DNA of 62,815 nucleotides, the filler included, from Octopus bimaculoides (Eukaryota): assembly GCF_001194135.2 (NCBI RefSeq). It is 5 parts of 5 records of this genome, joined end to end, with 100 filler letters (N's around TTAATTAATTAA, not from the genome) between each part and the next. Parts side by side here need not be neighbours in the genome. Positions count along the whole stretch, not along the records: positions 25,250 to 54,992 come from NC_068983.1; 4 more parts are not named here. One strand, given 5' to 3'. Made by a program: the position numbers and the translations under genes. Shown one piece after another: positions 8,656-47,093 of this stretch (within the stretch, counting starts at the first letter, position 1; each line of letters opens with the position of its first letter). The notes under the pieces were generated by a model. That model was not told the DNA's origin. It ran no database searches and saw only the letters and a list, made by a program, of their open reading frames with translations.

Positions 8656-8870
8656 CATCATCATCATCATCGTTTAACGTCCGCTTTCCATGCTAGCATG
8701 GGTTGGACGATTTGACTGAGGACTGGTGAAACCGGATGGCAACANNNNNNNNNNTTTCCATGCTAGCATGGGTTGGACGATTTGACTGAGGACTGGTGAA
8801 ACCGGATGGCAACACCAGGCTCCAATCTAATTTGGCAGAGTTTCTACAGCTGGATGCCCTTTCTAACGCC
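8656..8870 (-). mobile_element. Young RTE-type 3' terminal fragment with (GAT)n tail
   Basis: Reverse complement ends CCATGCTAGCATGGAAAGCGGACGTTAAACGATGATGATG; near-identical copy at 14399-14545. 8685-8744 is duplicated across the 10-N gap. Confidence 0.8.
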
Positions 8871-9135
8871 TGGTGGTTGTCTACTCCTTATGCAGAGCTT
8901 GACCACTTCCAGTACCTACACCTTAGAACCATCATGGCATCTGTTGTGGCTTTTTAAAACCAGACAAGGTTTTGAAAAGACACCCACATAGATTGCATGT
9001 TCAACTTGGACCACCAAGAGCTGCAGTTAAGTTCTGATCTTTGTGGATCTTAAAATGTCTTTTGAGGCTTCTGTTAAATTTGCAGACCTGGCATACATTG
9101 CACTGGAAGGTGTGCACAGACATAGGTAGAACATA
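8870..9135 (-). mobile_element. LINE (probably RTE) 3' end encoding two degenerate C2H2 zinc fingers
   Basis: FQCNVCQVCKFNRSLKRHFKIH, then after a stop TCNLCGCLFKTLSGFK/(frameshift)SHNRCH, stop at 8916, short 3' UTR ending GACAACCACCA. Confidence 0.6.
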
Positions 9136-10625: not shown

Positions 10626-10669
<44 letters not shown>

Positions 10670-11039
10670 GCTGATCTTTCAAAAAAAAAAAAAACCGAGA
10701 AAGGACGCTGGTCTGTGAGAAAAGCAGAACAAGAAAACAAAAGGAAAGGAAAGAAAACCAAGAGTTGCGTCCCCTTTGTTGAAATCTTAATCTAACAAAC
10801 GTCTGCTAATTCAAAAAGGAAGGAGGCCAAAGTGTGAAACAACATGCTCAATCTTGAGATTAGTTTCTTTTTCTGCCTTCCCTCATTCCACCTTTTGCTT
10901 TCACCTTTCTCTCACTTTTTCTTGTGCTTTCTCATAGACCAATGTTCTTTTGTCAGTTTTTCAAATAAGACCAACTACAGCCATGCTGGGGGCACCGCCT
11001 TGAAGGATTTTAGTCACATGAATCAATCCCAGAATTTTT

Positions 11040-11155
11040 AAGTCTGGTATTTATTCTATCAGTCTCCTTTGCTGAACCACTAGTTTACATAATGTCAAAG
11101 GTCTTGGTCATTGCCTCTGTAAGGCCCAACACTTGAAAGGTACTCAGCCACTTTG
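11040..11155 (-). mobile_element. SINE fragment (family B)
   Basis: TTCTATCAGTCTCCTTTGCTGAACCACTAG matches the family-B body seen at 20385-20670. Confidence 0.5.
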
Positions 11156-11179
11156 CCATATATATGTATATATATATAT

Positions 11180-11258
<79 letters not shown>

Positions 11259-11324
11259 TATATATATATACATACACACACATATATATATATACACCCA
11301 TATATATATATAATGTATGTATGT

Positions 11325-11730
11325 AGGTGCAGGTGTAGCTGTTTGGTTAAGAAGCTTGCTTTCCAACCATGTGGCCTTGGTTTCAGTCCCACTCTACAGC
11401 ACCTTGGGCAAGTATTTACTCTTATAATGCTGGTCAGATCAAAGCTTAGTGAGTGGATGGAAACTGAAAGGAACCCTTCATGTACATGTGTGTGTGTAAC
11501 TTTGTCTTGACATCATAGGACTGTTATAAATGAGTACCTCTATCACATAAGCGGAGTCCCTCATTTCCCATTGTCCATCAAAACATGATTGCTCATGGGG
11601 ATCTGTTATCTTGCTTCAGGACAGGTTAGGATTTGCAATAGAAAGGGCATCCAGTTATAGAAAAATTTGCCTTAATGAATTCCATCTCACCCATACAAGC
11701 CTGGAAAAGTGGATGTTAAATGATGTCGAT
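11325..11730 (+). mobile_element. tRNA-derived SINE (family B) ending in an RTE-like 3' tail
   Basis: Head GTAGCTGTTTGGTTAAGAAGCTTGCTTTCCAACCATG..; tail GAAAGGGCATCCAG..TGGAAAAGTGGATGTTAAATGATG, homologous to the RTE 3' end at 8656. Confidence 0.7.
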
Positions 11731-12269
11731 GATGAATGTCAACAGAGATTTCTTTTTCTTTTCCTTACCATTTTACTTGGTTCTTCCTAGGTTTCTACCT
11801 AATTGGTCTGTGCCATACATTCCTACTAATTTCTCTTTGGCAGATTTTACCCATTTGTTTTCCTCGTGGCTTCCACTACTTCATTATCCTTGGACTCACT
11901 GGATTTTCTACCAGTTATGTACTTCTAAAACATTTTTTTTTCTTCCTTTCATAAGAAAACACTTTACCGTCTGTGTGTGCTCACATCTGTCACATTCCTC
12001 TGGCCTTTCCATGTGCATCACCTAACTTCATTTCTTTTATCAGTTCCTCACCATACTAAAGACATTTCTTCCAACCTCCTTGGACTTTCTGCCAGTGTTA
12101 TGTAATTTATATATATATAAGGCTACTTCATGCTCTTCTTACCCCCCTATCTTTACTGGCCCTTAATTGGATGCTGCATGGAAGGGAGCAAAAAATTATA
12201 CTTCATTGAATCAAATTCACAATGTACATTACATTACCTTCCTGTTGTCCTTCTCAAGTATACAATTTT

Positions 12270-13480
12270 AGGTCCACAAACATCAACATTGGTATAATGA
12301 AAGGGAGATCTGTTGAGATTGTTGAAATGATGGAATGTCGTTATGTCAATATGTGTGGTGTGCAAGAAGCGAGATGGAAAGGATCCTCTGCTAGATTCCC
12401 CATGATTAAGAAACAGAGGTTTAAATTCTTCTGGGTGGGTAGGAGTGATGGAGTGGGTGGTGTAGGCATACTCTCAGCGGGAAAGCAGGTGGATAAGGTA
12501 ACTGAGGTAGTCAGAGTGTGCGATAGTGTTATTAAGTTGGGACTTATCATAGATTAACAATTACATTTATCTCTGCCTATGCTCCACAGGCTGGGTTAGC
12601 TGATGATCTGTAGGACCGATTATATGAGGTTGTTTTGCAAACTACCTCAACAACAAATGACAGAGACTTCGTTATTGTGGCCAGCAACTTGCAGTCTTAG
12701 AAAACAGTCTGATGGGAATATTAGCCAGGTTGATTACCTTCTCACCAGACAAGGAGATAGGTGGATGCTCAAAAATGCAAAATCTTTTTCCAGGTGAAGA
12801 GTGTACTCTCCAACATCGGCTACTAGTTAGTGACTTCAGAATTGGGGCTAGAAAGACTCAAAGACATAAACCACGCTGGAAAAGGAGATTATGGAAGCTT
12901 AAAGACCCAGCAAACCAACAAAAATTTAGAGACATTCTACTGGAGGCTTATGATGATAGAGAGGAGGAGGAGATATACAGCTTAGAGGACACCTGGAAGT
13001 TCCTGTGTGGGACAATTTACTGAGTGCCATTGTGCTAGGCAACCGGTTTCCATAGCAAAAGGAATAGGCGAAGGTAAGAAGTTATGTGTGAGGATCAGAG
13101 GTGTGAGGTGTTCAGGATTGCAAAGCAGTGTATCAGAGAGAATAGAGATGTGGTAAGTTGGAAATGTTCAAATGAATGATGGTATACTTGCATTTAGTGA
13201 CTCAGAGAAGAAAGATGTGTGGAGATGCCATTATGAAAGGTAGTTAAATGTGGAGAATGATTGGGAGAAGGAGATTCTTTCAAATATCGAACCAATTGAG
13301 GGACCAGCCATCAGAGTGGATAGCAGTGGAATAGACAAGGCAGTTAAGAAAATGAAGACAAGGAAAGCCCCTGGACCATCAGGTATTACTGCTGAGATGA
13401 TTAAAATATCAGGTAATGTGGGAAACAGCCTAGTCACTCAGGTTATTCAGGAAGGCATCATCCCCAAAGACTGATGTAGT
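12270..13480 (+). mobile_element. RTE-clade LINE ORF2 remnant (APE endonuclease to RT domain 0/1)
   Basis: GIMKGRSVEIVEMME..CGVQEARWKG..GVGGVGIL; ISAYAPQAG; QVDYLLTR; EECTLQHRLLVSDF; KAVKKMKTRKAPGPSGITAEMIK. Multiple stops and frameshifts. Confidence 0.92.
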
Positions 13481-13482
13481 GG

Positions 13483-13829
13483 TACTTTGAGGGCAGCTAC
13501 TTTGAGGGCAGTTACTTTGAGGGCAGCTACTTTGAGAGCAGCTACTTTGAGGGCAGTTACTTTGAGGGCAGCTACTTTGAGAGCAGCTAATTTGAGGGCA
13601 GCTACTTTGAAACAGTTACTTTGAGGGCAGCTACTTTGAAGACAGTTACTTTGAGGGCAGCTNNNNNNNNNNNNNNNNNNNNNNNNNNNNNNNNNNNNNN
13701 NNNNNNNNNNNNNNNNNNNNNNNNNNNNNNNNNNNNNNNNNNNNNNNNNNNNNNNNNNNNNNNNNNNNNNNNNNNNNNNNNNNNNNNNNNNNNNNNNNNN
13801 NNNNNNNNGGCAGTTACTTTGAGGGCAGC
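13483..13829 (+). repeat. 15-bp minisatellite TACTTTGAGGGCAG(C/T)
   Basis: 12 visible units (one is 14 bp) before the gap 13663-13808, and at least one more after it. Confidence 0.95.
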
Positions 13830-14398
13830 TACAAATTATGCCTAACTAATTTACAAAAAAAAAAAAAAAAAATTGTATTTTATGCATAGTAATCAGAGCA
13901 ACCTTCATAATTTTATTGAATTAGGTGCATATTTTGCCATAAAAGGAAAATGTTGCTATCAATTTATTTTATTATACTGCCTATCTAGGTGGCACATTCC
14001 TGATATACATAATATATATATTATGTAATTATACATATATATATATATATATGCTTGCTCTCCACTTTTAAACATTCCACCTTCAAACTTCTCTGCATCA
14101 TGATCTGAAATGTAAGGTTTTTTTCTACCCTGATGACAGAGGCTTGATTTATCCATTGGTTATTTGATTCCATTACAGACCGCATATTTTGGTGAACTAC
14201 ATCTACTAACATTAAGATGGATCTCTGAGCCCCCAGAAAACAGCTGTTGTACTAATAAACACCATACCACTTTCCCTATAATTTCCTCGGTCATTTGTAC
14301 TCAGAGAAAGTTTGATCTATTAATATATAAATATCTATATATTTATACTTAAATATTTATCATCTGAAAACCTTCAGTCTTTGCTTTCTTTCTGTTTA

Positions 14399-14545
14399 CA
14401 TCATCATCATCATCGTTTAACGTCCGCTTTCCATGCTAGCATGGGTTGGACGATTTGACTGAGGACTGGTGAAACCGGATGGCAACACCAGGCTCCAATC
14501 TAATTTGGCAGAGTTTCTACAGCTGGATGCCCTTCCTAACGCCAA
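14399..14545 (-). mobile_element. Young RTE-type 3' terminal fragment
   Basis: One visible mismatch relative to the 8656-8870 copy over ~140 bp. Confidence 0.8.
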
Positions 14546-14744
14546 CCACTCAGAGAGATACATATTTTGTATATGAAACCCAAGCTATTATATCTAATTT
14601 GTTTATCCACATAGTTGCCTCTATATATACATACCGGTACAGCCCAACATGCTGAGACCCCCTGTTCGGTCATGACTGACCATGGGATTGCACCTAGAAA
14701 GTTACCCTCCGAGGCACAAGTCCGGGCAAGGTTGTNNNNNNNNN

Positions 14745-14895
14745 NGCAACTCATTTCTACAGCTGAGTGAACTGGAGCAACATGAAATAAAGTGTCTTGC
14801 TCAAGAACACAACACGCAGCCCGGTCCGGGATTTGAACTCACAACCTCGCGATCATAAGCTCGACGCTCTAACCACTGAGCCATGCGCCTTCACA
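14745..14895 (-). mobile_element. tRNA-derived SINE head and body (family C)
   Basis: Reverse complement GTGAAGGCGCATGGCTCAGTGGTTAGAGCG..GAGTTCAAATCCCGG has A-box and B-box but no acceptor stem. Confidence 0.8.
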
Positions 14896-15244
14896 CCCCA
14901 ACATACACATGATATAGGACTAATTCTCAGACAGACTCAAAGCAGACCTAGACGAAGGAGAGCATGTTATTGACGAGGTGAATAGCAAAGAAAGGACTTT
15001 GATAAACAACTGATTGATTGCTTAATGAACAGATTAGACAAATGATCAATTAGTTGGTTGATTAGATAACTAACAATAAAGTGAAATTGAACCAGTGCAT
15101 GTGTTCATTATCATTGGTGTGATCACTCTCCCAATATACTATATATATAAAGCTGACTTTGCGTTTCATCCTGTTCGGAGTCAATAAAATAAGTACCAGT
15201 TGACCACTGGGATGGATGTAATCAACTTAATTACCACTAGGTAT

Positions 15245-15540
15245 GCGTTTAAAAAAACTACGTCCCTCTGCTAAGCCAAGTTGAGCCAGTGCGGCAGAGT
15301 AGGGTCATCAAATTATCTCAAGTTCAAATTCATGGCTTCCACATCAGACCATGGTTGGTGGAGAGAACATGCTTGAAGTCCCTGTTTTGCAGTGAACAGA
15401 ACATGGGCAATCCATTCCAATCATTCATACAACTGGCATTTCACATCTGGTTTCTGATCTTCAGGCTGGATAAGAAGTGGGTGCTCCATATCCTATCTGA
15501 TGATTGGGAATGTGAAATTCAAACAACCAGACATGAGATA
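15245..15540 (+). mobile_element. mariner-type transposase remnant
   Basis: RLDKKWVLHILSDD resembles the mariner KLDKWVPHELS (WVPHEL) motif; the remainder is decayed. Confidence 0.45.
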
Positions 15541-16367
15541 TTAATTGTTACATTCATAAATGCCCCCCCCCGCTTGATATTGTGCGTATGTATATATATA
15601 TATATATATATATTTAACTGTTTGAAGCAACTGATTTCTTCTGTTAATATTCCAAACTTGAAGTTCTTGTGAATTCGTTCAAGCGCAAAAGTAATTGACC
15701 AACTGGTTGGAATTCATAAGACGGTCACAAGAGCTAGAAACTCGGTCTAAGGACAAAATGAATCATCACTTTCAAACGAATAAATTCTACATGTGCTAAG
15801 TACTTCTCACAACGCGTATACACATGCATACACAAATATATATACGCTATGTATTTTGTCCTAATAAATTCATAACATATACATTGCACTAAACGTGCTT
15901 CAAATTTTGGATCTATGCATATTTTAATCTTCAACAAATAATCGAAAGACTCATGTTTACAGAAACGCTACGATATATAACATGAACTGGGAAACCAGAT
16001 ATATTTTCATACAAGCTATATCTAAACGTTGTATTTAGAATTTCGTAAACAATAAATAATAAAATACACAAAATAACAGTATAATGTTTTCGTATTTCCT
16101 AAGGCAACGTTAACAATAAGATAATTTTTCGGAGCATTAACCTCTTCTTGAGAACTGAAACCGTTTTTAATATTTATATCGACACTACCTGTCGATCGGT
16201 TTCATCTTTTATCTCTGAAGATGAGGTTAATGACCTCCTCCTTCGATTGGAATCTTTTTAACAAGTCCTATTAGACATTAATATCAGTTTCGCCGTCAAA
16301 CATTCCATTCGACTGTAAGTCTGAATTCTCCAATAGTTTTCTTTATCTTTAGTGAATATTCCCTTAC

Positions 16368-16432
16368 AAAAGAATCACTTTTACGCACGACGCTAAGACA
16401 TTAACGGGTGATATTTTGGACACTAACGCCAT
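16368..16432 (-). CDS. Candidate first coding exon MALVSKISPVNVLASCVKVIL..
   Basis: AGATGGCG start context followed after 65 nt by a GTAAGG donor; lies beside the promoter motif cluster. No matching next exon identified. Confidence 0.25.
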
Positions 16433-16674
16433 CTACATAACTAAATCAATTATTACATTAACATTTTACATTCTTGTTTTGTTTTCTACAACTTCCAAAA
16501 GACAATTTTCAGCTAGATCTAAATTCTTTCGCTCTTAGCCTGACGGGAAACCTTTTACTCTTTAAGCATTTCTTGTTAAATACGATTGATAACATGACGC
16601 AAGAAATGGCGCCCAACTAACTTCCTGTTTAAATTTTCTACCATGACATTTACTGTACTACTTCTGCGCATGCG
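16427..16674. promoter_or_regulatory. Housekeeping-type promoter motif cluster (YY1, ETS, NRF1-like)
   Basis: CGCCATCT 16427-16434, AAATGGCG 16604-16611, ACTTCCTG 16620-16627 and TGCGCATGCG 16665-16674 in unique sequence. Confidence 0.5.
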
Positions 16675-16928
16675 TCTAATATTTATTATATAGTTGTCTT
16701 GTAGAGTATCAACATTGGAGCTAGTTTTATTTCTTAACAAAGCATTTCAAAAAGCTTATATATAAATATGTTTTGCATTATATTAGATACTTGATTTTTT
16801 TTTTATAAACTTTAAAAATATTTTTAATAAGGAAATTACAAATATAAATATATTATTTATTTACAAAATATACACACACATAGTCCAACATTAAAAACTA
16901 CATTATATATATATATCTATAATATAGA

Positions 16929-16962
<34 letters not shown>

Positions 16963-17257
16963 CACAGAAATATATCCATACAATAATACTTCCTTGAATA
17001 TGTCTTACTCTCGTCCACGTGAGATTAGGTATTGTTGACTCTGCCTCTCCCTCTCTCTTTGTGTATGTATGTGTGTGTCTCTCTCTATATATATGTATAT
17101 ATATATATTGTTGCTTGGCTGAAGAGAAGGCAAAATTATTTAATGATAATGGAAATAAGAAAGAAATAGAGAATTTCTGAAAGAAAAGAAATTATTTTTT
17201 TCCGTTCATATTTTTAAACTCTTTCTAACGACATATCAGAAAGAGGTCAGTTAGTAT

Positions 17258-17362
17258 CCGCCATTTTCGGATCTTCCTTCTTCACACGGGTGTATTGTTG
17301 CTGCATGTTTTCATGACAACGTCATTGATTTAGACATTGTATATTGGATTTTATTCTATCAG
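17258..17362 (+). promoter_or_regulatory. Candidate TSS / non-coding first exon
   Basis: CCGCCATTTT (YY1 consensus) at 17258-17267, a pyrimidine-rich leader, then a CAG|GTAAAT donor at 17362/17363. Confidence 0.4.
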
Positions 17363-17940
17363 GTAAATTCTAAAATTATCATATATGTTGTTAAAGTATC
17401 AATTTTTTTGAATGCTGTATTTTTTTCACCCCAAACCGTCCCCGAACTTAGCACCAACCTCCAGTTGTTTACAGATTTATGAAAAAAGAAGCAACAAAAA
17501 CATTCTATTTCCGAGTTTATTTCTGAGTTTATTCATATTTTAACTTCATTCCATAATCGACCCGTCGACATATTACAGTTTACTTCACAAGCATTTAATC
17601 TATTCGGTCGAATATAGTTAAATTCGTTGAATACTTTCGAAAGTCTTTCATTTTCTCGCTGGTGAAACTATGTCGACCCTCCATTTTGTAACCACACTAC
17701 ACATGTCTTAACATATTTATACTGAATATCTCTCCCCCAGGAAAATATATTCACTGTTTTATTGTATCACAGACGTTCTATATTAATTCTTACTCACACA
17801 ATATATTCTTATGATCGTTTTTTCATTTCGTATTATTTTAAAACAATTTTATAGATTTTTGTTTTGCATGGTATCAAATTACTTCGTTAGCTATGATACT
17901 TAAATGCCTCTCAGATATTTGTGTGTGTGTGTGTAATATA

Positions 17941-17990
<50 letters not shown>

Positions 17991-18000
17991 NNNNNNNNNN

Positions 18001-18039
<39 letters not shown>

Positions 18040-18226
18040 TATATTACACACACACACACACATATATAGATATTGTGATATTTTATTTATCTATCTATAC
18101 ACACAATCGCAAATACGTTATCAGATGGCAGCGTGATATTAATTTTTTGTGGGGTTCGATTTTCACTTTCCAGATTTCTAGAATCAACAAAAAGGAAATA
18201 ATGATATATTTATGTGATACACACAG

Positions 18227-18285
<59 letters not shown>

Positions 18286-18725
18286 TGTGCGTGTGTAAAC
18301 ATTTTGTGCGAGTATTTTTGTGTATATGTGTGTTAATATGTTTGTGTTAGAATATGATTTTACATGCGTGTGCGTGTGTATAAATACACCTATATATGTA
18401 TATATGCCTGTGTATATTACTGTATATTCCAAACAAGAGATATTTACAAATAAATGTAAATATTTAGCCAACGATAAGAGCCACGTACTCGATCGCAATG
18501 TCAGCTAAAAATAACAGCTAAGATAGCCTTCAACTCATTACTCTACTGTTTTGGTAAGAATAAATTGAAAGGCTCTTTCATCCTTGATATGCTTAATCAG
18601 AACTGATAGACAAAAGCGATAAGAAACACATACATGCGTGTGTTTAGTGCTAACCCACCAAACTCTTGGTCATTGAGTCACTCTGCTATTTCACTCAAAT
18701 TTTAAATATCTATCTATCTATCTAG

Positions 18726-18763
<38 letters not shown>

Positions 18764-19099
18764 CTCTGTTTGGTGATGCAAACTGGAAAATAGAATTCAA
18801 AACTAGTATATAAATATTTTAAAAATTTGACTGAAGTCGTAGAGTAAACTCAATGGCCAACAGTTTATATATTTATATATATATATATATATGCACACAC
18901 ACACACACACGACTTAGTACTCCGTTCTATATGTTTATGCATGCGTAGATATGTAAAAATAATCCACTATATTGTAATGTGTGTGTGTATATATGTATGT
19001 ATATATATATAATTGACTCTCTCTCTGTCTCTCCCTCTCTCTCTGTATGTATATATATATATATATTCGTGCATACATGTATATCTACTCACAAATATT

Positions 19100-19330
19100 T
19101 GATGGAATCATCATTTTACGCCTGATTTCAATGCAGGCATGGGTTAGACGGATTGTCATGTTCCGAATCTTACTATATTGGAAGCCGCTGCTTTCTCTAG
19201 ACTGTCTGTAGGTGTCATTTAGTTTGGTTTCTACGGCTGGATGCTCTACCTATCACCGACCACTTCACAGATTGTGCTGGATGTTTTTTTGTTTTCTTTG
19301 GTTGCACCAGTATTAGAGAGATTGTCTTGC
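19100..19330 (-). mobile_element. Old diverged RTE-type 3' tail copy
   Basis: ATCATCATTTTACGCCTG..GCATGGGTTAGACG..TTTCTACGGCTGGATGC is homologous to 8656/14399. Confidence 0.6.
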
Positions 19331-25909: not shown

Positions 25910-26089
25910 NNNNNNNNNNNNNNNNNNNNNNNNNNNNNNNNNNNNNNNNNNNNNNNNNNNNNNNNNNNNNNNNNNNNNNNNNNNNNNNNNNNNNNNNNNN
26001 NNNNNNNNNNNNNNNNNNNNNNNNNNNNNNNNNNNNNNNNNNNNNNNNNNNNNNNNNNNNNNNNNNNNNNNNNNNNNNNNNNNNNNNNN

Positions 26090-26310
26090 CTGTACTCTTT
26101 CACCACAACTTACTCTTACTTCCTGCTTCTGTTGTGCCTGTAATTCAAAGGGTCAGCCGTGTCACGCTGAATATCCCCGAGAACTACGTTAAGGGTACAC
26201 GTGTCTGTGGAGTGCTCAGCCACTTGCACGTTAATTTCACGAGCAGGCTGTTCCGTTGATCGGATCAACTGGAACCCTCGACGTCGTAAGTGACGGAGTG
26301 CCAACAACAT
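26090..26310 (+). mobile_element. 3' half of tRNA-derived SINE (family D)
   Basis: Near-identical to 43880-44327 and 50480-50734; ends GGAGTGCCAACAAC. Confidence 0.9.
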
Positions 26311-26311
26311 A

Positions 26312-26348
<37 letters not shown>

Positions 26349-26828
26349 CTTGTATGTATGTATTATGTGGTTGAGTGTATGTGAATGTTTATATCTGCAT
26401 GCTCAAATATATGTGGCTATATGCTTCTTTGCCAAATTCTGACTATCTATGTGTTCATATGTGCCTGCAGTCATTGCAACTGGTGTAAACGGAAGAATAG
26501 AGAATAAGATCGTTCACGGCGTCTAGTATCTAAATCCAATTTTATGCTTCATTTCACTTGAATCGATAAAATATATCTTTAATACCGGTGGGTCATTTCA
26601 ACCGATAGTAGACTAGTTAAATGCGAAGGAATTAGTTTGTGATCATATATGACTTTTACCTTGCAGTGATGCCCTATATGTAATATTTAACGTCGAAAGC
26701 TCTTTCACATGCAACCCATGAGAAGCAGAGTATGAATCTCATGAAATGATAAACCACAATCACTAGTGTAGTGCGAGACCAATAAAATAAAGTACCAGTC
26801 AAATCCCAGAATTACAACTAACCCAACT

Positions 26829-27002
26829 AAAATATAAGGACACAGATCGTATCGTATAGCCAGCTGGAGACGATGTCTCCAGGGGCTAAATTACAGCAAC
26901 ATTCGTCCTAAACCAGGACTGCCATGTTATTTTGGCAAACAATCTTTACTCCAAAGTACTGTTCCTGAACATCTCTCGTTGTGAGATTTAAAAATACTAA
27001 TT
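26829..27002 (+). repeat. 174-bp direct repeat, left copy (DR1)
   Basis: 164/174 identical to 31352-31525 by manual alignment; no TG..CA termini. Confidence 0.95.
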
Positions 27003-27043
27003 TTCTAATTTATAGATCAGTGACTAGTTGTCACTTTGAAAAC

Positions 27044-27091
27044 TATATATTTCGAACGGGAATTTGGCAGCGCCACCTCTAGCCGAACAAT
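27044..27091. repeat. Left arm of an interrupted hairpin element, ending in 17-bp target motif copy 1 (27075-27091)
   Basis: TATATATTTCGAACGGGAATTTGGCAGCGCCAC is an imperfect inverted repeat of 31326-31359; it ends in ACCTCTAGCCGAACAAT. Confidence 0.75.
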
Positions 27092-27805
27092 TTCGTTGTT
27101 TTTTGAAGAATACTAAGTGGAATTTTGTGCGAAGCCACCGTCGTTGGATGGAAGTGAATAGTGGAAGAAAAGAAAAGTTACGCGGAAGCTACTGGAGGTC
27201 GAGATACCATAGCCCTATGTGTGCTGAAGCCGAAAAGGATAGAGTGGGATGAGGAGAAGATAGCAAAATAATATGGCATGATAGAAAAAGAAGGGTCAAA
27301 CATAAAATGACCCTGCCAGAGGAGGAAAAAAGAAAAATGGAAAACAAAACGGTGATATTCAGAACATTTTCGAATGCAAATAGAATAGAACACGCGCCGC
27401 AGGAAGAGATAGAGGAAATATTGAAGGAACAAATGGGTGAAGGAATAACCTTCTTTACAAGAGGAAGGGGATACGTGACTATAAAAGTCACCTTTGCATC
27501 AGAAGAGGAGGCGAAAATGAACGACAACAGACTGATACTAGGAGAGAAATGGACGTTGGTGCCGAACTTTTGGAGCAAAAGAATCGTCAGGGTCAGGGTG
27601 GGACGAATCCCACCGTCAATAGACCCAGAATGGGTAATAGTCGCAATATTTAATTCAGAGCTGGTGAAGGGAAGTGAAAACCTGAACATTTGCATAGTAA
27701 GCAGAACTCATCAATTGAATTGAATTGAGGGGGATATAGTGTTGAAGTGATTTGCGCAGTAAGCCCAGAATATCACGACGATATTGTGCCTGTAATAAAG
27801 AATTA
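27092..27805 (+). mobile_element. Tx1-type ORF1-only unit 1 (ORF cut before the zinc knuckle)
   Basis: KSYAEATG; ENKTVIFRTFS..ITFFTRGRGYVTIKVTF..RIVRVRVGRIPPSIDPEWVIVAIF..GYSVEV; then directly the AATAAAGAATTA terminus. Confidence 0.8.
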
Positions 27806-27822
27806 ACCTCTAGCCGGACAAT

Positions 27823-29616
27823 GGCGACGAGCGACCTTGAACCCTGAGTTGAGTGAAGTTTGCGTTTGAGTATACGTGTAAATCGCTTTGTTGAAGGTCT
27901 TTCGTACTTACTGTTAATTAATTGAATTGCCGAATTATTATTTTTGCTTAATTGTTTTCTTCCTCATTTGTGGGTGAAGTTGTAACAAACGAAAAGATGG
28001 AGTCCCAGCCAGTCGGTAGCTATGCTGCAGCAACTGGGAAGGGTTTGATTGCGGATGTACAAGTGAGAGAAGTGAAATTTGAGGAGAAAAGATTGGAGTT
28101 TAACGAAATCATCGCAAAGGAGGTACCAGCCTGAGGCTGACCCCGCCTAAAGAAGTGACAGAGAAGACGACGAAAAGGACAGTAGTCTAAAGACCGCTGT
28201 CCACAGCAAACGGTAGAAATATCTACGGTGGAAGCAGTGGTGGAATGTCTAAAGGACATAAAGGAACTCACAACATTTTATACTAGAGGAAAGAAGTACG
28301 GAACAGTGGAGGTTCGGTTCGCGACCGAACAGGACGCGATAAAGTACTCCACTATGCCGTTGAGGTCATCAAGTGGGCACTACTGCCAACCTACTGTGGC
28401 AAACGTGCGGCCAGAGTTAGGATTGGCAAAGTGCCCCAGAGATCGATGAGCCGTGGTTGGTGGCAGCCATCCTCTTCAATACAGAGGAAGAAACAAGAAT
28501 TCTCAAGGTTACAAGAACAACAGAGGTAAACTGCTGGGGATACGGCCTCGAGGTGACGGTCCAAATCAGTTTCCCGGATTTGCATAAAACCACAGAAGAG
28601 ATTATATTGCTTGAGGATGTAAAACTGAGAGGGGTAGTGGAGGGAAGATCTTCCATCTGCTACCATTGCGGAGTACGAGGACACATGAAAGCGAGGTGTC
28701 CCCAGAAATACGAAGAGGAAGTAGAGCAAGAGCAGCAGGAAGAGGAAGAAGAACAAAGAGTTGAGGCACAAATGCAAGTAAGCAGAAAGAATACAGAAAA
28801 TGTGGGAGAAAAGTATACAGTAGGAAAAAGAAAGAAGAGAGAAGAAAACGTGAATTCGCCACCCAAGAGTCCGCTGGAAAAGAGAAAGGAGAATATAGAA
28901 GAGACTCAGTGTGTAAGACCAGCCATACCAAAGGGAATTATTACGGAGGAGAAAATAAGTGTGCGGAAAAGAAAGGAAGATAGAAGAGAGATACCAACAA
29001 CAACGAGTGAGAGAGATACAGAGAATGATGAGACACCGATACCAGGAATGTCAGAAGAGAATAATGATGGAAAGCGGGAAGAGATACCAAAAGGAAAACA
29101 CATTAGGACTATGATAAACTATTAAAAAAAGTGTGGAAATCAAGAAAAGAATTACAAAGATGAAACCTGTAATTAGAGTTAAGTTAGCGGAGAGTGAGTG
29201 TAGTGACAGCTACAAGGCATTTTTGCTTGAGAGAGTGAGAGGGGAGAGAGGTTGAAGGAGCTATTTGGAGAGAAAATCGAAATATCGCCGATACAGGTTC
29301 GGTACGATGAGTTGCCACCAGTGGTGTCATTTAAGGACTTAATAGAACACATAATGTAAATGAAAGTAAGTAAAATGTTTAAAATTTTAAATAGAGACAA
29401 ACGATGCACGAAGTGAACAGTGAACTCTAGGTTAAATGTTATAAATGAACAGTTATATAACACTGCCTGCGAGTGGGGAGCAGGTAAGACATTGCATTTT
29501 TCATTTTATCATTTAATCATTATAATTCATTATTTCATTCGTTATAAGTTTTATGTACCCCCACTGTGATGTGTTGTCTGTCTTTGTAAGAACCTATGTG
29601 ATCAAATAAAGAAACT
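27823..29616 (+). mobile_element. Tx1-type ORF1-only unit 2 (gag-like, CCHC knuckle, 3' UTR, poly(A) signal)
   Basis: ATG 27997 MESQPVGSYAAATG; TTFYTRGKKYGTVEVRF; VEGRSSICYHCGVRGHMKARC; E/K-rich tail; short extra C-terminal segment; no ORF2; AATAAAG at 29605. Confidence 0.88.
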
Positions 29617-29633
29617 ACTTCTAGCCGAAGAAT

Positions 29634-31244
29634 TGTTTCGTGCAGACGAGGTCTTTTTGCGTCGTGAATTGGAACAAGGTCGTCGTATCGTGTGTTGGAT
29701 TTGTGAATTGTTGTGTTGCGTCGCAGCGGAGTTTTTTTGGTGAAGCTGTCCCTCAACAGTTTGAGGAGGAATGGTTGAGACTTATTCGGACATGAGTGAG
29801 TCAGAGGAGTCATATTCGGAACTGTCGTCGTCTGAAGAGGAGCTGGTAAAATCTGTGAAGAAGATGGACAGAGCTATAAAAATGAAAAGTTTTGCGAAAG
29901 TAACAGAGGTGCCAAGGAAAGAAGTAAACCTCAAAATTTTGAAAAACTATGAAAAAATGCTAAAAAAAGGAAGGTGGTGACATGAAATTGTTACCACCAC
30001 AAGAAATACTAAGAGAAATAGAAGAAAGGAAGATTGTATACAAGGTCTATTCTGTCAAGGAGAAAAGGTTAGAGAATGAACAGACGGACGAAATTGTAAA
30101 GGCGTTGAGGCCAATCTGGCAAGATTGCCAGAGGAAACCAATACAGCATCGTTGAGGTGTATTTCAAGAACAAGGTAAAAACAAAGGAAAGCTCAGAAAA
30201 ATCAATGAAAATGGAAAGGGTAATCCTTCTACCCACATACCTTGGAAGAACTTCTTAGGTCAGGGTGGAGGGACCGCCCCCCTCCCCTGAAATAGACGTA
30301 GCTTGGGTGGCGGCGGCTGTGCTTCTAGGAAGCGAGAAAGAGGTCGCCGTACTCCAGGCTACAGGAACGGAAGCCACTAATTGGTACGGTGAAATTTTGG
30401 AACTAATAATACAGAGTGAGGTGGAAAACTTAGAGTTGCTCGCGGAAACGGTGACAGTTGGAGAAACAATGATGAAAGTGTGGGTAGAGGGCAGAATCCC
30501 TCGTTGCTATAAATGTAGCCAAAAGGGCCACATTAGAGCGGACTGCCCTCTGAAAAATAAACCAATCCAGGAAAGAGCAGAGAAGGAACTGGAAAGGATA
30601 GAAAAAAGAAATGAGGAAGATTGATGGCAAGATACGGGAAGAAAACAAAGGAAGAGGAAAAAGGACAGCTTAAGTGAACCCAAGCCCCTACCCACCCCAC
30701 CCATACCCTCAACCTCATCCTCCCCCTGAAGATACCAAACTCACCCATTCCCCTCCGACACAAAAAAGAAAAAAAGAGCAGCAGTCACACAAAAAAACGC
30801 AAAACGTCCTTCCCTCTTGTTTTGTTTGCGCCTTATTAAAAGGTGTAAAAAAGGATGTGGTAGAAAAGCTAATGCAATGGAAAGACGTAAAAGTGACAGA
30901 CATGAAGGGAATGAAAACAGAAAAAATGGTTTTAGGCGCATTGGTACCAGGACACAGAATGAAAATAATAAGAGACTGTAAAGAAAGCGCGGAATACAGA
31001 CAAATGGTATTCGACATAAATGAAGTACCGGAAGGAATAGATTATGATAAATTACTGGGCCTATACGGTATTAACTTTAATTGGATATGGAAGGGCGATA
31101 ATGATGCTGCTGAGTTGCACATTCTTCATACAGCATTATCATGTGTCATTCATATTTTCATAATTTTATTTTAATTGTTATATGTCCCCACATGTCTTGT
31201 GTTGTCCACTCTCTGTATTATAGTTTTATCGTGATAAAGAGTTA
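29634..31244 (+). mobile_element. Tx1-type ORF1-only unit 3 (gag-like, CCHC knuckle, extra C-terminal domain)
   Basis: KSFAKVT; RKIVYKVYS..RGNQYSIVEVYF; PPSPEIDVAWVAAAVL; VEGRIPRCYKCSQKGHIRADC; Pro-rich linker; CFVCALLKGV..LGLYGINFNW; GATAAAG at 31233; no ORF2. Confidence 0.88.
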
Positions 31245-31359
31245 ACCTGTAGCCGAACAATTATTCTGTGCTAATGAAGGGAAATAACCCGGAAATTGCG
31301 ATACACAGATATTGTTTTGAGTTGAGTGGGGGTGCTAGATTCCCTTGTTCGAAAATATA
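31245..31359. repeat. Target motif copy 4 plus remainder and right arm of the interrupted hairpin element
   Basis: ACCTGTAGCCGAACAAT, then TATTCTGTG..CACAGATATTGTTTTGAGTTGAGTGGGGGTGCTAGATTCCCTTGTTCGAAAATATA, which pairs back onto 27044-27091. Confidence 0.75.
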
Positions 31360-31525
31360 AGGACACAGATCGTGTCGTATAGCCAGCTGGAGACGATGTC
31401 TGCTGGGGCTAAATTACAGCAACATTCGTCCTAAACCGGGACTGCTATGTTTTGTTGGCAAACAATCTTTACTCCAAAGTCCTGTTCTTGAATATCTCTC
31501 GTTGTGAGATTTAAAAATACTAATT
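31352..31525 (+). repeat. 174-bp direct repeat, right copy (DR2)
   Basis: 10 substitutions relative to 26829-27002. Confidence 0.95.
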
Positions 31526-31643
31526 CACTAACTCAAAATTTCAGACTTTGGGCCTTGGCTAGAAACAATTACATATTTACAACACCAAGTAATTTGTAAA
31601 ATGAGAAATGAAATGTTTAGCAATGCCTACTTTGGCTCCAGAC

Positions 31644-33554: not shown

Positions 33555-33810
33555 NNNNNNNNNNNNNNNNNNNNNNNNNNNNNNNNNNNNNNNNNNNNNN
33601 NNNNNNNNNNNNNNNNNNNNNNNNNNNNNNNNNNNNNNNNNNNNNNNNNNNNNNNNNNNNNNNNNNNNNNNNNNNNNNNNNNNNNNNNNNNNNNNNNNNN
33701 NNNNNNNNNNNNNNNNNNNNNNNNNNNNNNNNNNNNNNNNNNNNNNNNNNNNNNNNNNNNNNNNNNNNNNNNNNNNNNNNNNNNNNNNNNNNNNNNNNNN
33801 NNNNNNNNNN

Positions 33811-34589: not shown

Positions 34590-34794
34590 GTTAGCTTTTA
34601 CTTGTTTCACTCCAGCAGCCAAGCTGGAGCACCACCTTGAAGGGTTTTCGTCGCACAACACCCCCTCCTCGCCCGTACTCATTTATTTTTTAAGCCTGGT
34701 ACCTGTTCTATGTGTTTCTTTTGCCGAACCACTCGTCATGGGAATATTAAAAAAACACCGGTTTCCAAGCAGTGGTGAGGGACAAACACATAGA

Positions 34795-34832: not shown

Positions 34833-35283
34833 GTTATAATATTATAACTCGTACGTAACCTTATCATTTCGCATTTGTCTTGCTTCTATATGTTGGTTCC
34901 CTGACGATGAANNNNNNNNNNNNNNNNNNNNNNNNNNNNNNNNNNNNNNNNNNNNNNNNNNNNNNNNNNNNNNNNNNNNNNNNNNNNNNNNNNNNNNNNN
35001 NNNNNNNNNNNNNNNNNNNNNNNNNNNNNNNNNNNNNNNNNNNNNNNNNNNNNNNNNNNNNNNNNNNNNNNNNNNNNNNNNNNNNNNNNNNNNNNNNNNN
35101 NNNNNNNNNNNNNNNNNNNNNNNNNNNNNNNNNNNNNNNNNNNNNNNNNNNNNNNNNNNNNNNNNNNNNNNNNNNNNNNNNNNNNNNNNNNNNNNNNNNN
35201 NNNNNNNNNNNNNNNNNNNNNNNNNNNNNNNNNNNNNNNNNNNNNNNNNNNNNNNNNNNNNNNNNNNNNNNNNNNNNNNNNNN

Positions 35284-35314
<31 letters not shown>

Positions 35315-35946
35315 ACAGGCTTCTTTCAGTTTTCGTCTACTAAGTCTTCTCACAAGTCTTCTCAAACGACTTTGTTCGGCCTAACGCTACAGCATTCTAA
35401 GAAATAATACAAGTCGAAGGATGGCTGTGCGCAATATGAGAGATCTGAAAGAGTTTCTTATTGGTTATGGAGCAGGAGAGAGAAGTTGAGCTGGAAGCCA
35501 AGAGGCGATGATGAGCAGTGATTTGGTCACCTCTGCTGACCTGACAACGAGAGGATGTTACGGTTCAGAGTTGAAACACCCGATGATCGTTGGATACCGT
35601 CTAATTATATCAGTTCCTCCTGGGATATTCCAACCATTTCTATTGTTGTTACTCAACACAGGGTAAGCTTTATTTGTCACTGCTTTTAGTCTATTCGGAT
35701 GTCATACCCTAGATAATTCCTCATCCAGACAGAGATAAAGGCGAAAAACCACTGAACGACACTAATGTTATTGGCTGGGGCACAACATGAAGTTAAGGAC
35801 CTATCAAAACTAATTAGAAACAGGGCTTCTTGGCGCAGCTATCTGAGATGCATTTCGGTTGCTGCTACTTTACACAAGCAACAAACCTGTAGGCGTATGT
35901 GTGGGTGTGTATGTGGCTGTCAATGGATTGATTATTTTACTCATGC

Positions 35947-35979
<33 letters not shown>

Positions 35980-36337
35980 TGTGTGTGTGTATGTAACTGT
36001 GTGACTTTACATTCTCTACGATTGCCATTTTGTAACTTTTAGTATGCGTATTATGTTGAGGTATATATATATATATATNNNNNNNNNNNNNNNNNNNNNN
36101 NNNNNNNNNNNNNNNNNNNNNNNNNNNNNNNNNNNNNNNNNNNNNNNNNNNNNNNNNNNNNNNNNNNNNNNNNNNNNNNNNNNNNNNNNNNNNNNNNNNN
36201 NNNNNNNNNNNNNNNNNNNNNNNNNNNNNNNNNNNNNNNNNNNNNNNNNNNNNNNNNNNNNNNNNNNNNNNNNNNNNNNNNNNNNNNNNNNNNNNNNNNN
36301 NNNNNNNNNNNNNNNNNNNNNNNNNNNNNNNNNNNNN

Positions 36338-36375
<38 letters not shown>

Positions 36376-42389: not shown

Positions 42390-44530
42390 AAAAAAATTGA
42401 TCAGAGTTTGTCCAGAGAGGAAAAGTTACACTTCAGTTCTCCACACATAATATCCTTCAGCTTAAACACCAACCAAATGAAAACCAGCCGCTTTTCCTTA
42501 CAAAAGAAAGGCAGTGAAGCGATCTTAATAAACTCAGCTGACAGCTGCGTCCGATCTAAACTTGTCAGTATATGTTCAACGCTTGTCCATAGGCTTGCAT
42601 GCACAGATACTTCACCTGAATGAATACGTGTAGGTTGGTTTCGTCGGCATGCGAGCATCTCATGCAAGTTTCGTTTTTAGAGCTCCCATGCTTGTGGAAC
42701 TTGTCCCGAACAGGTAATACTTGTAAGATCTCCAGGCGAAGGGCTTTTAAAAGCTGTAATTATTTCCAACTGAAAGCCCTCCAGAAGAGACTGATTGAAT
42801 CAATATTGTTCTCAAGCCATTGCTTCTCACGCCCTCCACCGATTGACATAAAACGTGTCGCATGAAAAGCAACCACACCTGTTTTTTGTCATCTTCGCTA
42901 CCTCACTGCACACGTGCGCTTCATCAGCAATGACATCTCGAGAATTAAATCCCAACCAATGGAAGAAGTCAAAAAATATACGCTATAATCTTGTTAGATT
43001 CTTCATTGGACATTTTTCATAGAACATTTTTCTGCGATAACTTCATCTCAAGCTATTTCTGATGAATCCAGCCACCCTGCTCACGACTACTTTTCAGCTC
43101 TTTCTCCACCAACAGGTTCGATCCCAACCAAACACTGAGTTCCTTAACCAGACTCTCAGTCCAATAACAGAAACTGTCGCTGGGCGACTTTGATTTTCTC
43201 CTCCTGGTGCCGAATTACAAGTCCACCTACTTGCGTACTGCGTACCCCTGCTCTCTCATGGTACGGTGCCAACCGATTCGATTTTCGAAGTGTCCGATGC
43301 AGTAAACAATGAGGACACCGTATGTAGTCACCGTATACAGTGAGGAAACCTAGGTAAAGCTCTCCCTATGTCCGATTTCAAGCGCAATGTGCTTCAAGAT
43401 CTCCAACCTCCGCAATAAGGGATCCGAGACTTAAACATACGGACGAGAGACGAGAGAGTATCCTTGAAGGATTGATCGTGTAATACGAAACTGTTCCAAG
43501 AGGTGGTTGTTTAGTTTGGGCATTGCATAGATGTCATTGTAGATTGTGATGATCTAACCTCTCGGAACAGGCTACTTTTAGAATAGCTACCAGTGTCGTA
43601 AGCTTTAGATTGATTTAATTTTGTCCCCACTGAAACCGGTTCTATTTCCGGTACACTCTATGATGTATTGCATGAGGTGGAGATTGTTTTGGATAGAGCT
43701 ATCTTGGATCTCATAAGGTTAATGTCTCTGACTGGGAGGCGCAATGGCCCAGTGGTTAGGGCAGCGGACTCGCGGTCATAGGATCACGGTTTCGATTCCC
43801 AGAACGGGCGTTGTGAGTGTTTATTGAGCGAAAACACCTAAAGCTCCACGAGGCTCCGGCAGGGGATGGTGGCGAACCCTGCTGTACTCTTTCACTACAA
43901 CTTTCTCTCGCTCTTACTTCCTGTTTCTGTTGTGCTTGTAATTCAAAGGGTCAGCCTTGTCACACTGTGTCACGCTGAATATCCCTGAGAACTATGTTAA
44001 GGGTACACGTGTCTGTGGAGCGCNNNNNNNNNNCGAAAACACCTAAAGCTCCACGAGGCTCCGGCAGGGGATGGTGGCGAACCCTGCTGTACTCTTTCAC
44101 TACAACTTTCTCTCGCTCTTACTTCCTGTTTCTGTTGTGCTTGTAATTCAAAGGGTCAGCCTTGTCACACTGTGTCACGCTGAATATCCCTGAGAACTAT
44201 GTTAAGGGTACACGTGTCTGTGGAGCGCTCAGCCACTTGCACGTTAATTTCACGAGCAGGCTGTTCAGTTGATCGGATCAACTGGAACCCTCGACGTCGT
44301 AAGCGACGGAGTGCCGACAACAACGACAATGTCTCCGACTACACTACCAGCGACAAGCACCAGCCACTTTATAACCACCTATGCCAAAATTTTCAAATCT
44401 GTGTCTAGTAGAGTTATGAACCCGAAGTTGCTTGTGATGTTCCCTTTGTTCGGGTGTTTCTTTAACAGCATCATTACACACTGCAAAGAAAACTGGGAAT
44501 GCTTCCAGTTTGTTGTTAGCTGAAGTAGAT
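42390..44530 (-). mobile_element. Tx1/L1-type LINE ORF2 remnant (RT to C-terminal zinc-binding region), interrupted by a SINE
   Basis: MMLLKKHPNKGNITSNFGFITLLDTDLKILAK (44370-44520); FRITRSILQG..DPLLRRLEIL (43380-43520); LPVRDKFHKHG..TCMRCSHADETNLHVFIQ (42600-42720). Confidence 0.88.
43734..44327 (+). mobile_element. tRNA-derived SINE (family D) with 13-bp TSD
   Basis: A-box TGGCCCAGTGG, B-box-like GTTTCGATTCC; TSD AATGTCTC(T/C)GACT at 43721-43733 and 44328-44340; 195 bp duplicated across the 10-N gap. Confidence 0.92.
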
Positions 44531-44718
44531 AGCTGCCAAGACAGCAGTGAACATGTCTGGTATTTAGTAATATAGCTGGAAGGGCAGACCACCCTGCTTC
44601 GGCAATTTGTCCCTCGTAGAACAGCTTAATGCTGCTGCTGCTGTTGTTGTTGTTGTTCTTCTTCTTCTTCTTCTTCTTCTTCTTTTTCTTCTTCTTCTTC
44701 TTCTTCTTCTTCTTCTTC

Positions 44719-46399: not shown

Positions 46400-47093
46400 C
46401 AATTATCCATATTTTATTTAAGGACGACCTAAAGTTGTACACTGCAGCTGAGAAACAATTGCCCACTTCAGTAAGCAGGACAGATATTTACTCGAGGAAC
46501 TGATATCAGATTTGGATCAGAAAAAAATGCCAAGGCAACTTTTTAGAGGAAAATTGCGGGCATTCATACTATGCTAGCTAAAGAACATGGATAAGAGAAT
46601 TAAATCAAACACGGGCCTACAAATACTAAGAGTCAATAAATTAGACTAAGTATAACGCGAAAAAACTTAATGAAAGATTAAAAATGAATATTATTTTAGC
46701 CTGAGATTAATACTTGGAACATAGCTTCTTTTTCTTTTTCTTTTTTTTGCGCGTTTCAGTCATTGAATTGTAGTCGTACAGGAGCACCACCTTAAGGTTG
46801 TAGTTTTTTAAAAATGGAGCCTATTACTTAGTTTTTAGAGTCTGGTACCTATTCCATCGATCTCTTTTGCCGAACAGCAATATTAGATNNNNNNNNNNNN
46901 NNNNNNNNNNNNNNNNNNNNNNNNNNNNNNNNNNNNNNNNNNNNNNNNNNNNNNNNNNNNNNNNNNNNNNNNNNNNNNNNNNNNNNNNNNNNNNNNNNNN
47001 NNNNNNNNNNNNNNNNNNNNNNNNNAACCGGCGTTGACTTCTTTACTTCTCCATAATCTGGCTGTAGAAGGGTCACAAAGACAAACACACACG

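Follow-up and report, generated by a model that had tools for sequence, protein, structure and literature searches.

A composite of three ORF1-only LINE families and a hammerhead-like repeat in Octopus bimaculoides, punctuated by one 17-bp site

Within a 62,815-nucleotide stretch of DNA from Octopus bimaculoides (NCBI RefSeq assembly GCF_001194135.2; referred to here, filler included, as the window, of which positions 25,250 to 54,992 come from record NC_068983.1), we describe a head-to-tail stack of three retroelement units, U1, U2 and U3, separated and bordered by four copies of a single 17-bp sequence, T, and set in a repeat, H, that carries a hammerhead-like motif. The units are members of families of long interspersed nuclear elements (LINEs) that contain the first open reading frame (ORF1) and lack the second (ORF2). 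We consider it probable that the block is a decayed composite of H and three such families, inserted successively at T by target-primed reverse transcription.

Architecture of the stack

A search of the window for T (ACCTCTAGCCGAACAAT) with up to three mismatches returned four sites, starting at 27075, 27806, 29617 and 31245, all on the plus strand and with 0, 1, 2 and 1 mismatches, respectively; 0.05 sites are expected from shuffled sequence, and none of 100 shuffles reached four. All four copies named in the original prediction were thus recovered. It had also placed (A/G)ATAAAGA before the last three copies and not before the first, and this is what we see: copies 2 to 4 are each directly preceded by this motif plus 4 nt, which is the 3' end of the element, and the sequence before copy 1 is H, unrelated to that end. 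The stack and its surroundings comprise the following features.

26817-26826: candidate left target duplication of the whole H block, ACTAACCCAA
26829-27008, plus strand: left copy of the direct repeat R, the conserved body of H; homologous to H in loci L001, L006, L007 and L009
27009-27074, plus strand: H segment '66' between R and T, colinear with H of L001 and L006
27075-27091, plus strand: T1, ACCTCTAGCCGAACAAT, the leftmost T, preceded by H
27092-27805, plus strand: U1, ORF1-only, internally deleted, 5' untranslated region (UTR) kept
about 27161-27778: remnants of U1 ORF1, with an intact open reading frame at 27307-27723
27794-27805: U1 terminal sequence AATAAAGAATTA, joined to the broken ORF1
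27806-27822, plus strand: T2, ACCTCTAGCCGGACAAT
27823-29616, plus strand: U2, ORF1-only; ATG at 27997, CCHC knuckle at 28658-28699, several frameshifts and stops, 3' end AATAAAGAAACTA
29617-29633, plus strand: T3, ACTTCTAGCCGAAGAAT
29634-31244, plus strand: U3, ORF1-only; ATG at 29771, CCHC knuckle at 30505-30546, frameshifts, 3' end GATAAAGAGTTA
30674-31174: C-terminal open reading frame of U3
31245-31261, plus strand: T4, ACCTGTAGCCGAACAAT, the rightmost T, after which H continues
31262-31351, plus strand: H segment '90' with the hammerhead-like motif, homologous to L001 8910-8990 and 11117-11200
31265-31309, plus strand: hammerhead-like motif, type I layout
31352-31525, plus strand: right copy of R; end of H
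31527-31536: candidate right target duplication of the H block, ACTAACTCAA

The lengths between T copies are 714 bp (U1), 1794 bp (U2) and 1611 bp (U3), and the units stand head to tail. Outside the junctions no DNA similarity is detectable among them; their proteins are homologous, with pairwise identities of 32-41%, in agreement with the earlier description of gag-like ORF1 units too diverged to compare as DNA. Each unit contains frameshifts or stops. In U1, ORF1 breaks off near 27778 and passes into the last 12 nt of the element, with loss of the CCHC knuckle and the 3' UTR. The stack is bracketed by the 180-nt direct repeat R (26829-27008 and 31352-31531, 93% identical; repeat family D16).

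False joins made by an assembler at a common 17-mer could in principle yield such a pattern, and the scaffold does have many N gaps elsewhere, in a region rich in repeats. However, there are no N runs within 26829-31531, a 17-nt word is shorter than the usual assembly k-mers, and analogous junctions occur in three other chromosome-level assemblies, at L001, L004 and L007. We regard an artefact of this kind as extremely improbable.

T as a duplicated target

Relatives of the units were examined at nine loci (L001 to L009), each reached through the ORF1 proteins, and the sample is therefore biased; at L005 the 3' end falls in an N gap and is uninformative. At L008, a unit resembling U3 lies within a short interspersed nuclear element (SINE) common in octopus. 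Its ends (5' TGTTT..., as in U3; 3' AATAAAGAAATC) abut a clear 18-bp duplication, AGAAA[C/T]GTTAGCACGCCG, at about 9440-9458 and 11063-11080, T is absent, and in a neighbouring copy of the SINE the duplicated sequence is present once and uninterrupted. These elements therefore produce target-site duplications (TSDs) of about 18 bp, and T does not belong to the element itself.

Copies of H lead to the same point from the side of the host. At L007, a unit resembling U1 sits inside a single colinear H copy, at the position used in the window, with a TSD of about 18 bp; it is flanked by CTGCTGGGTTCGTCTAGCTC and TGCTGGGTTCGGCTACTC, after which H resumes. L006 holds an inverted, uninterrupted copy of H with one T-like site that passes directly into the hammerhead-like motif; beside it lies a direct copy, interrupted at the T-like point by a U1-like unit. 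The empty site anticipated earlier was thus found, at another locus than the window. We therefore read T best as a TSD, and T is shown to be H sequence. The claim that T is a duplicated target has held, given TSDs of 15-18 bp among the relatives (L008, L007 and the L001 mini-insert described below), unrelated sites included, the T-less SINE copy and the single site in uninterrupted H. A tRNA scan found none, hence no tRNA-derived target.

A 69-bp mini-insert at L001 (11968-12036) complicates this picture. It is a 5'-truncated 3' end of a U2-like unit within a perfect 15-bp duplication, TTGAACTTGCACCAA. Its last 48 nt consist of the U2-like 3' end and a 13-nt T-like tail, AGCTAGCAAAGAC, which is also contained in the T-like sequence behind the full unit, at a distance of 1 kb. 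The 21 nt at its start, TCAGCTAAGCCAACAAACCTA, are T-like as well and may be the trace of a template jump. The tail would reflect a short 3' read-through of the RNA, about 20 nt past AAUAAA. Since a T-like 3' tail here lies within unrelated TSDs, T can occasionally travel with the RNA. We had considered on this basis that T is the 3' terminus of the element, and dropped the idea because the ends at L008 and L007 abut TSDs without T.

More broadly, T might be part of every element, as a 5' promoter or initiator or as a fixed 3' tail, and the array might have arisen by tandem duplication or unequal crossing-over. The T-like sequence at the 3' end of the mini-insert would fit. However, the units are three families without DNA similarity, which excludes recent tandem duplication; a T-like sequence occurs in an H copy with no adjoining LINE; and the isolated U3-like copy at L008 has no T at its 5' or 3' end and abuts the SINE duplication instead, which largely refutes this explanation. 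It is very improbable, and T at the 5' end of an isolated copy in unrelated flanks, named in advance as a finding that would speak for it, was not what L008 showed.

The mini-insert bears more directly on a second alternative, in which the stack was laid down in a single event: the reverse transcriptase (RT), on arriving at the 5' end of the RNA of one unit, jumped to the T-tailed 3' end of another RNA, and did so twice, and the internal T copies are RNA read-through. Some 13 nt of T-like sequence can be present at the 3' end of the RNA, and the 21 nt at the 5' end of the mini-insert resemble T, as after a jump; a homotypic head-to-tail array at L003, 99.4% identical, also lacks an obvious duplicated target at its left edge. 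Against this, the internal spacers are all exactly 17 nt, the length of the outer duplication, whereas RNA tails are expected to vary (13 nt at L001); three distantly related families would have to meet in one complex; and the L003 array is uninformative about targets, as it runs into an assembly gap on the right. We judge a single event to be quite unlikely.

Two further observations concern the SINE. On the minus strand of L009, at about 37980, the 3' end of an ORF1-only or related LINE also lies in the common octopus SINE, at a position unlike that at L008; such insertions point to a possible secondary target or to off-target insertion. In the window, pieces of this SINE (...CTTTTGCCGAAC..., ...GGGGTCGATAAATTAAGTACCAGTTGCG) are found at 34686-34729, 46832-46875, 53262-53294 and 54955-54987.

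The units as ORF1-only derivatives of LINEs

A profile search of a library of 1.84 billion representatives yielded 623 protein relatives of ORF1. Wherever a species is named, it is an octopod (Octopus bimaculoides, O. sinensis, O. vulgaris or Argonauta hians), and the window is octopod DNA. No RT domain was found in the long protein relatives of ORF1. At L003, from O. vulgaris, a 503-residue ORF1 homologue (4623-6134) is followed by an ORF2 of 1132 residues (6058-9456) with the domains Exo_endo_phos (apurinic/apyrimidinic endonuclease, APE), RVT_1 (RT) and zf-RVT; L002, from O. sinensis, has the same layout, with ORF1 at 9965-11812 and decayed ORF2 fragments up to 15113. Residues 3-868 of the L003 ORF2 match human L1 ORF2p with E=2e-71 and R2 with 1e-24. 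Being far closer to L1 ORF2p than to R2, they place the group with the L1 group of APE LINEs, to which we assign, on sequence grounds, the autonomous relatives at L003 and L002; the window units themselves have no ORF2. The closest named homologues of ORF2 are unnamed teleost and invertebrate LINEs without a clade label.

The first copy at L003 has intact ORF1 and ORF2, which suggests that the element may have been active recently. It belongs to an array (4438-19184 of OX597840.1) in which a full-length autonomous LINE is repeated head to tail in at least 2.8 copies with a period of about 5275 bp and 99.4% identity, joined as ...AAATAAAATAAAACACTGATA|AGGACGTTAC..., its right end in an N gap. 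An unrelated LINE is represented in the window by ORF2 fragments on the minus strand (43101-44612), 29-35% identical to the L003 ORF2.

The CCHC knuckle scores above the Pfam zf-CCHC cut-off in both U2 and U3. Profile matching gave no RNA-recognition motif (RRM) in ORF1 at the sequence level. In an AlphaFold 2 model of one ORF1 family member, P0006, the pLDDT is close to 90 for residues 30-240; Foldseek ranks tandem-RRM proteins (IMP3 RRM12, Sxl and U2AF65) highest, with probabilities up to 1.0 and low global TM scores. We thus predict from the model that ORF1 carries tandem RRM-like domains in addition to the CCHC knuckle.

None of the units of this type, in the window or at L001, L006, L007, L008 and L009, has an ORF2 next to it, and an architecture of ORF1 plus UTRs in 1.6-1.85 kb is common to all of these loci, across species. 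U1, U2 and U3 are, by these comparisons, members of ORF1-only LINE families, which bears out the earlier view of them as ORF1-only retroelements. The AATAAAGAATTA terminus of U1 resembles the AATAAAAAGAATTA end of the autonomous L002 element.

The units are also three old, distinct lineages with closer relatives at other loci. U1 is closest to the units at L006 (68% DNA and 52% amino acid identity) and L007, with 65-68% DNA identity for the two. U2 has its closest relative in the single unit at L001, 70% identical over about 1.6 kb from the start of ORF1 to the 3' UTR. For U3 the relatives are L004 (65%) and L008 (74% over a short stretch); the L008 unit is 1604 bp long, against 1611 bp, and shares the 5' start TGTTT. 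Since the lineages were already distinct on arrival, local tandem duplication is excluded. Both parts of what had been proposed, three distinct families and the inadequacy of recent tandem duplication, are upheld by the lack of common DNA similarity and by the closer relatives at other loci and in other species.

The host repeat and its hammerhead-like motif

Removal of the units from the window leaves R-66-T-90-R, which corresponds to some 1.5 turns of a cycle of about 353 nt; H at L001 likewise amounts to about 1.5 cycles. The cycle is non-coding and runs in the order T, hammerhead-like motif, segment '90', R, segment '66'. H surrounds the units at L001, L006, L007 and L009. Where it begins and ends varies from locus to locus, like circular permutations of one cycle, and it lies mostly within (TA)n, often with an inverted partial copy upstream. 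Two H copies at L006 (7140 and 9331) and one at L009 (12059) stop near the point at which R ends. At L006, an inverted pair of H fragments from the R part (6885-7140), with (TA)n on both sides, contains no LINE, which shows that H moves alone and is laid down as inverted and direct partial copies.

T ends 4 nt upstream of helix I of the motif in the window. The order that follows is helix I, CUGANGA, helix II, GAAA, a very short self-complementary helix III and the cleavage-site dinucleotide (UC or UA). The window copy has helix I TCTGTG/CACAGA, the core CTAATGA (G5 mutated), helix II GGG/CCC, GAAA, a short helix III and the site TA. Searches of the window piece, L001 and L006 against Rfam gave no hammerhead, even at E<=10, and no HDV-like ribozyme, snRNA, 5S or spliced-leader family.

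In a manual type I fold, 85.5% of cells are paired, against 15-51% when the partners are slid, and in 6 of 11 pairs both partners have changed; the structure was derived from the same sequences that were used to score the pairing. Across six copies, counted segment by segment, 50 of 60 helix positions pair, a number reached by none of 5000 shuffles. Helix I exists in three different, fully complementary versions among the six copies, CUGANGA is intact in three and GAAA in five. The G10.1-C11.1 pair, typical of published Penelope-type hammerheads (PMC4209133), is not conserved. We describe the motif as hammerhead-like, a fold supported by helix covariation, and H as a probable retrozyme or Penelope-like element. 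The original prediction drew a parallel with Tx1L, which inserts in a DNA element; the host here is no DNA transposon, being instead a repeat with a cycle of about 353 nt and a hammerhead-like motif.

The presence of R on both sides of a gag-like interior, as direct repeats of 93% identity, could suggest a long terminal repeat (LTR) retrotransposon, or an element like a terminal-repeat retrotransposon in miniature, in which R is a 180-bp LTR around a gag-only interior. Yet R starts AAAATATAAGG and ends ...ACTAATT, without TG...CA termini, and there is no conserved primer-binding site or polypurine tract, the stretch that follows R being neither like such a site nor conserved from locus to locus; the supposed LTRs are permutations of one cycle that differ in length, with boundaries that vary by locus; the candidate flanking duplication measures 10 bp rather than 4-6 bp; and the interior is LINE ORF1 with TSDs of its own. 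We find this explanation barely credible. The reading of R as an LTR, and of 'TGGCAGCGCC' before T1 as a primer-binding site, was abandoned as neither is conserved at other loci. A description of the right-hand H as a 3'-truncated, LTR-like copy was replaced by that of all H copies as permuted pieces of one cycle.

Target specificity across loci

At L001, L006, L007 and L009, the point of insertion into H is the one used in the window, 0-4 nt upstream of helix I. The number of units per locus is one at each of these four, two at L004 and three in the window, so that loci with other unit numbers, as had been foreseen, do exist. That three insertions in the window have the same boundaries and the same orientation speaks strongly for site specificity. 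Target preference is not uniform, as shown by the L008 unit in a SINE and by L004, which has another spacer. At L004 (about 9750-10800 of O. bimaculoides CM046605.1), a second heterotypic stack consists of a U3-like and then a U1-like unit, separated and preceded by spacers of 11-13 nt, ACACAACACAG and CCACACAACCCAG, in place of T. This spacer may be a different target used by related families.

Specificity extends to a sister family. At L002 (9720-9778 and 15347-15375), a sister LINE ending ...AAGAATTA (...GAATTA) abuts an (ATT)n/(TTA)n microsatellite on both sides, and a fragment of the sister family at L009 (about 7273) likewise ends ...GAATTA against (ATT)n or (TTA)n. We take it, from these junctions, to be a microsatellite-specific lineage, so that target specificity runs in this group of LINEs.

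Formation of the stack

The simplest account of these observations is sequential, site-specific, target-primed reverse transcription, with template-jump concatenation the weaker rival. Nicks staggered by 17 bp would lead to duplication of T; each insertion would leave an intact T on both sides, which a later T-specific element could enter, giving T-U-T-U-T-U-T. The three units share one orientation and one exact site of 17 bp. An autonomous partner, itself unseen, presumably supplied ORF2 in trans. The RNA of the element may read a few nucleotides into T and anneal to the nicked target, as proposed for other site-specific LINEs. The insertions would have been sequential, and the complete stack may afterwards have been copied here along with H. 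Of the idea that successive insertions each duplicated T, the duplication stands; the order is our inference, and template jumping is still an alternative, given T on the RNA tail at L001.

Several points weigh against this account. T is able to travel on RNA and template jumping occurs, to go by the L001 mini-insert. No ORF2-bearing partner sharing the 3' end of the units and flanked by T was found among the nine loci, and the autonomous element that had been expected is thus missing from this sample. The L004 stack has another spacer, and H was not detected there. Some of the U1-like insertions in H may stem from a common event. Lastly, the block has its own candidate TSD and the R...R redundancy, and the stack need not have formed here.

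The last point leads to a related scenario, in which the stack was built elsewhere by LINE insertions into T and H-unit(s)-H was then copied here as one piece by a mechanism of the H type, either Penelope-like or that of a rolling-circle retrozyme; T may still be a TSD in origin, and R...R would be a terminal redundancy left when copying ran a little past one cycle. At either end the block consists of H, flanked by the ACTAACCCAA/ACTAACTCAA duplication, which matches at 9 of 10 positions, and the ends of H are permuted at different loci. The H repeats that flank units are about 93% identical both at L001 and in the window. At L009, an inverted copy of 780 bp between two (TA)n tracts covers the 3' part of the unit, the T-like spacer and H in one unbroken piece, which suggests either that a composite of unit and H was copied as one piece or a local inverted duplication. 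Published work reports that the protein of Penelope-like elements (PLEs) can extend the two DNA strands and that circular RNA of retrozymes yields tandem cDNA (PMC11167929, PMC7229834). On the other hand, an H of 1.5 cycles that landed first and was then hit three times gives the same picture, the L009 structure could be that local inverted duplication, no second copy of the same composite was seen at the nine loci, and the flanking duplication is weak, being equalled by 68 of 5000 shuffles (p ~0.014, suggestive only). We hold copying as one piece to be possible, if somewhat doubtful.

An extension of this scenario would make the LINE ORF1-only modules, settled beside its hammerhead, the coding cargo of a retrozyme, with H-unit(s)-H transcribed from H, cut by the hammerheads on its flanks and copied by a Penelope-type RT, possibly by rolling circle on circular RNA. 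It would explain the R...R redundancy, the permuted ends and the inverted copy of unit plus H at L009. We think it unlikely; if true, it would be the first retrozyme with a coding insert, and a two-tier partnership of a LINE and a ribozyme retroelement comparable to the dependence of R2 on rDNA transcription.

Other features of the window

A dispersed repeat, D12/D13, occurs at 43735-44327, 50346-50734 and 26137-26314. The copies near 44 kb and 50 kb are 93-95% identical to each other and 83% identical to the one that lies shortly before the stack. Long microsatellites of the types (TG)n, (TA)n, (TGA)n and (CTT)n, together with N runs, lie at 25910-26100, 33620-33810, 35020-36340 and elsewhere. 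Rfam 'miRNA' matches all fall on microsatellites and were discarded as artefacts.

Implications

What is new here is a host of the hammerhead-like, retrozyme type whose target site adjoins the ribozyme-like motif, and the fact that several deep ORF1-only lineages are stacked at a single site that regenerates; there is also a hint that such composites are re-amplified. The stack is nevertheless an instance of transposons inserted into other transposons, which varies a known behaviour and does not amount to a new kind of system. LINEs with target specificity are of interest as natural site-directed insertion systems, and here several deep lineages within one group of animals have a common target of about 17 bp. 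Its nick spacing and orientation are defined and it regenerates itself, which provides a natural record of repeated integration at one address. The location of the target 0-4 nt upstream of a hammerhead-like motif links two classes of retroelements that have been studied separately, and raises the questions of whether the LINEs use the transcription or ribozyme processing of H and whether they are re-amplified as its cargo. Furthermore, an abundant octopod family of ORF1-only LINEs, with its 623 protein relatives, stands as 'uncharacterised' genes in current annotations.

Comparison with known systems

The host is most readily compared with metazoan non-LTR retrozymes and the pLTRs (pseudo-LTRs) of PLEs, for which the published unit range is 170-400 nt (PMC7229834, PMC4209133, PMC11167929, bioRxiv 10.64898/2026.07.22.740005). 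H shares with them a cycle of about 353 nt, the type I layout with a very short self-complementary helix III, permuted and partial-tandem copies, insertion in (TA)n and an inverted 5' partial copy beside a direct one; as in retrozymes, the candidate TSD flanking the window block, at 10 bp, exceeds 4 bp. It differs in that its motif is Rfam-negative, with G10.1-C11.1 not conserved and the core intact in only three of six copies, and in that it carries protein-coding LINE units, which is not a described feature of those elements.

R1 and R2 insert site-specifically into repeated, transcribed ribosomal DNA (rDNA), where RNA with target-derived sequence can anneal to the nicked site, and the 5' end of R2 forms a self-cleaving ribozyme at the junction. 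The octopus system resembles them in site-specific insertion into a repeated target, in an element RNA that would carry part of the target and in the presence of a ribozyme-like motif at the junction; unlike in R2, that motif is part of H and is found 3' of the insert, and the type of endonuclease differs. Co-transcription of R1 and R2 is noted in PMC4494074.

The likeness to HeT-A arrays proposed in the original prediction survives only in part. With the gag-only, head-to-tail telomeric arrays of HeT-A and TART in Drosophila, the stack shares gag-only units placed head to tail. There is, however, no sign of a chromosome end: ordinary repeat-rich DNA lies on both sides, and a duplicated internal site of 17 bp separates the units, which terminal addition would have joined end to end, so that the analogy is a loose one.

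HAL1 is an ORF1-only derivative of mammalian L1. Similarly, the octopus units keep ORF1 and terminal sequences, lack ORF2 and propagate as a family; unlike HAL1, their ORF1 is of the RRM and CCHC type, they are target-specific, and they form several deep lineages across octopod species.

Finally, a preference for particular target sequences is frequent, though not universal, in the Tx1 clade. LINEs of the Tx1 clade are known to insert into other transposons, snRNA genes or microsatellites (PMC4494074). Kibi and Koshi are microsatellite-specific members of this clade (PMC4494074, citing Kojima and Fujiwara 2004), and the octopus sister families at L002 and L009 also abut a microsatellite; the microsatellite is a different one, and the window families have a complex site of 17 bp as their target instead. 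Tx1L inserts in Tx1D in Xenopus laevis, and the crocodilian Tx1-Mar in Mariner-N4_AMi or LTR elements (PMC4494074). The octopus stack has in common with these an APE-type LINE lineage, a fixed site in another mobile repeat, a fixed orientation and a target duplication. It differs in its hammerhead-like host, in the ORF1-only nature of the inserts and in the stacking of several families at one site. Of the Tx1-type character given to the units in the original prediction, the analysis thus shows membership of the L1 group, from the ORF2 of their autonomous relatives, and a target specificity like that of Tx1, and we speak of LINEs of an L1/Tx1 group.

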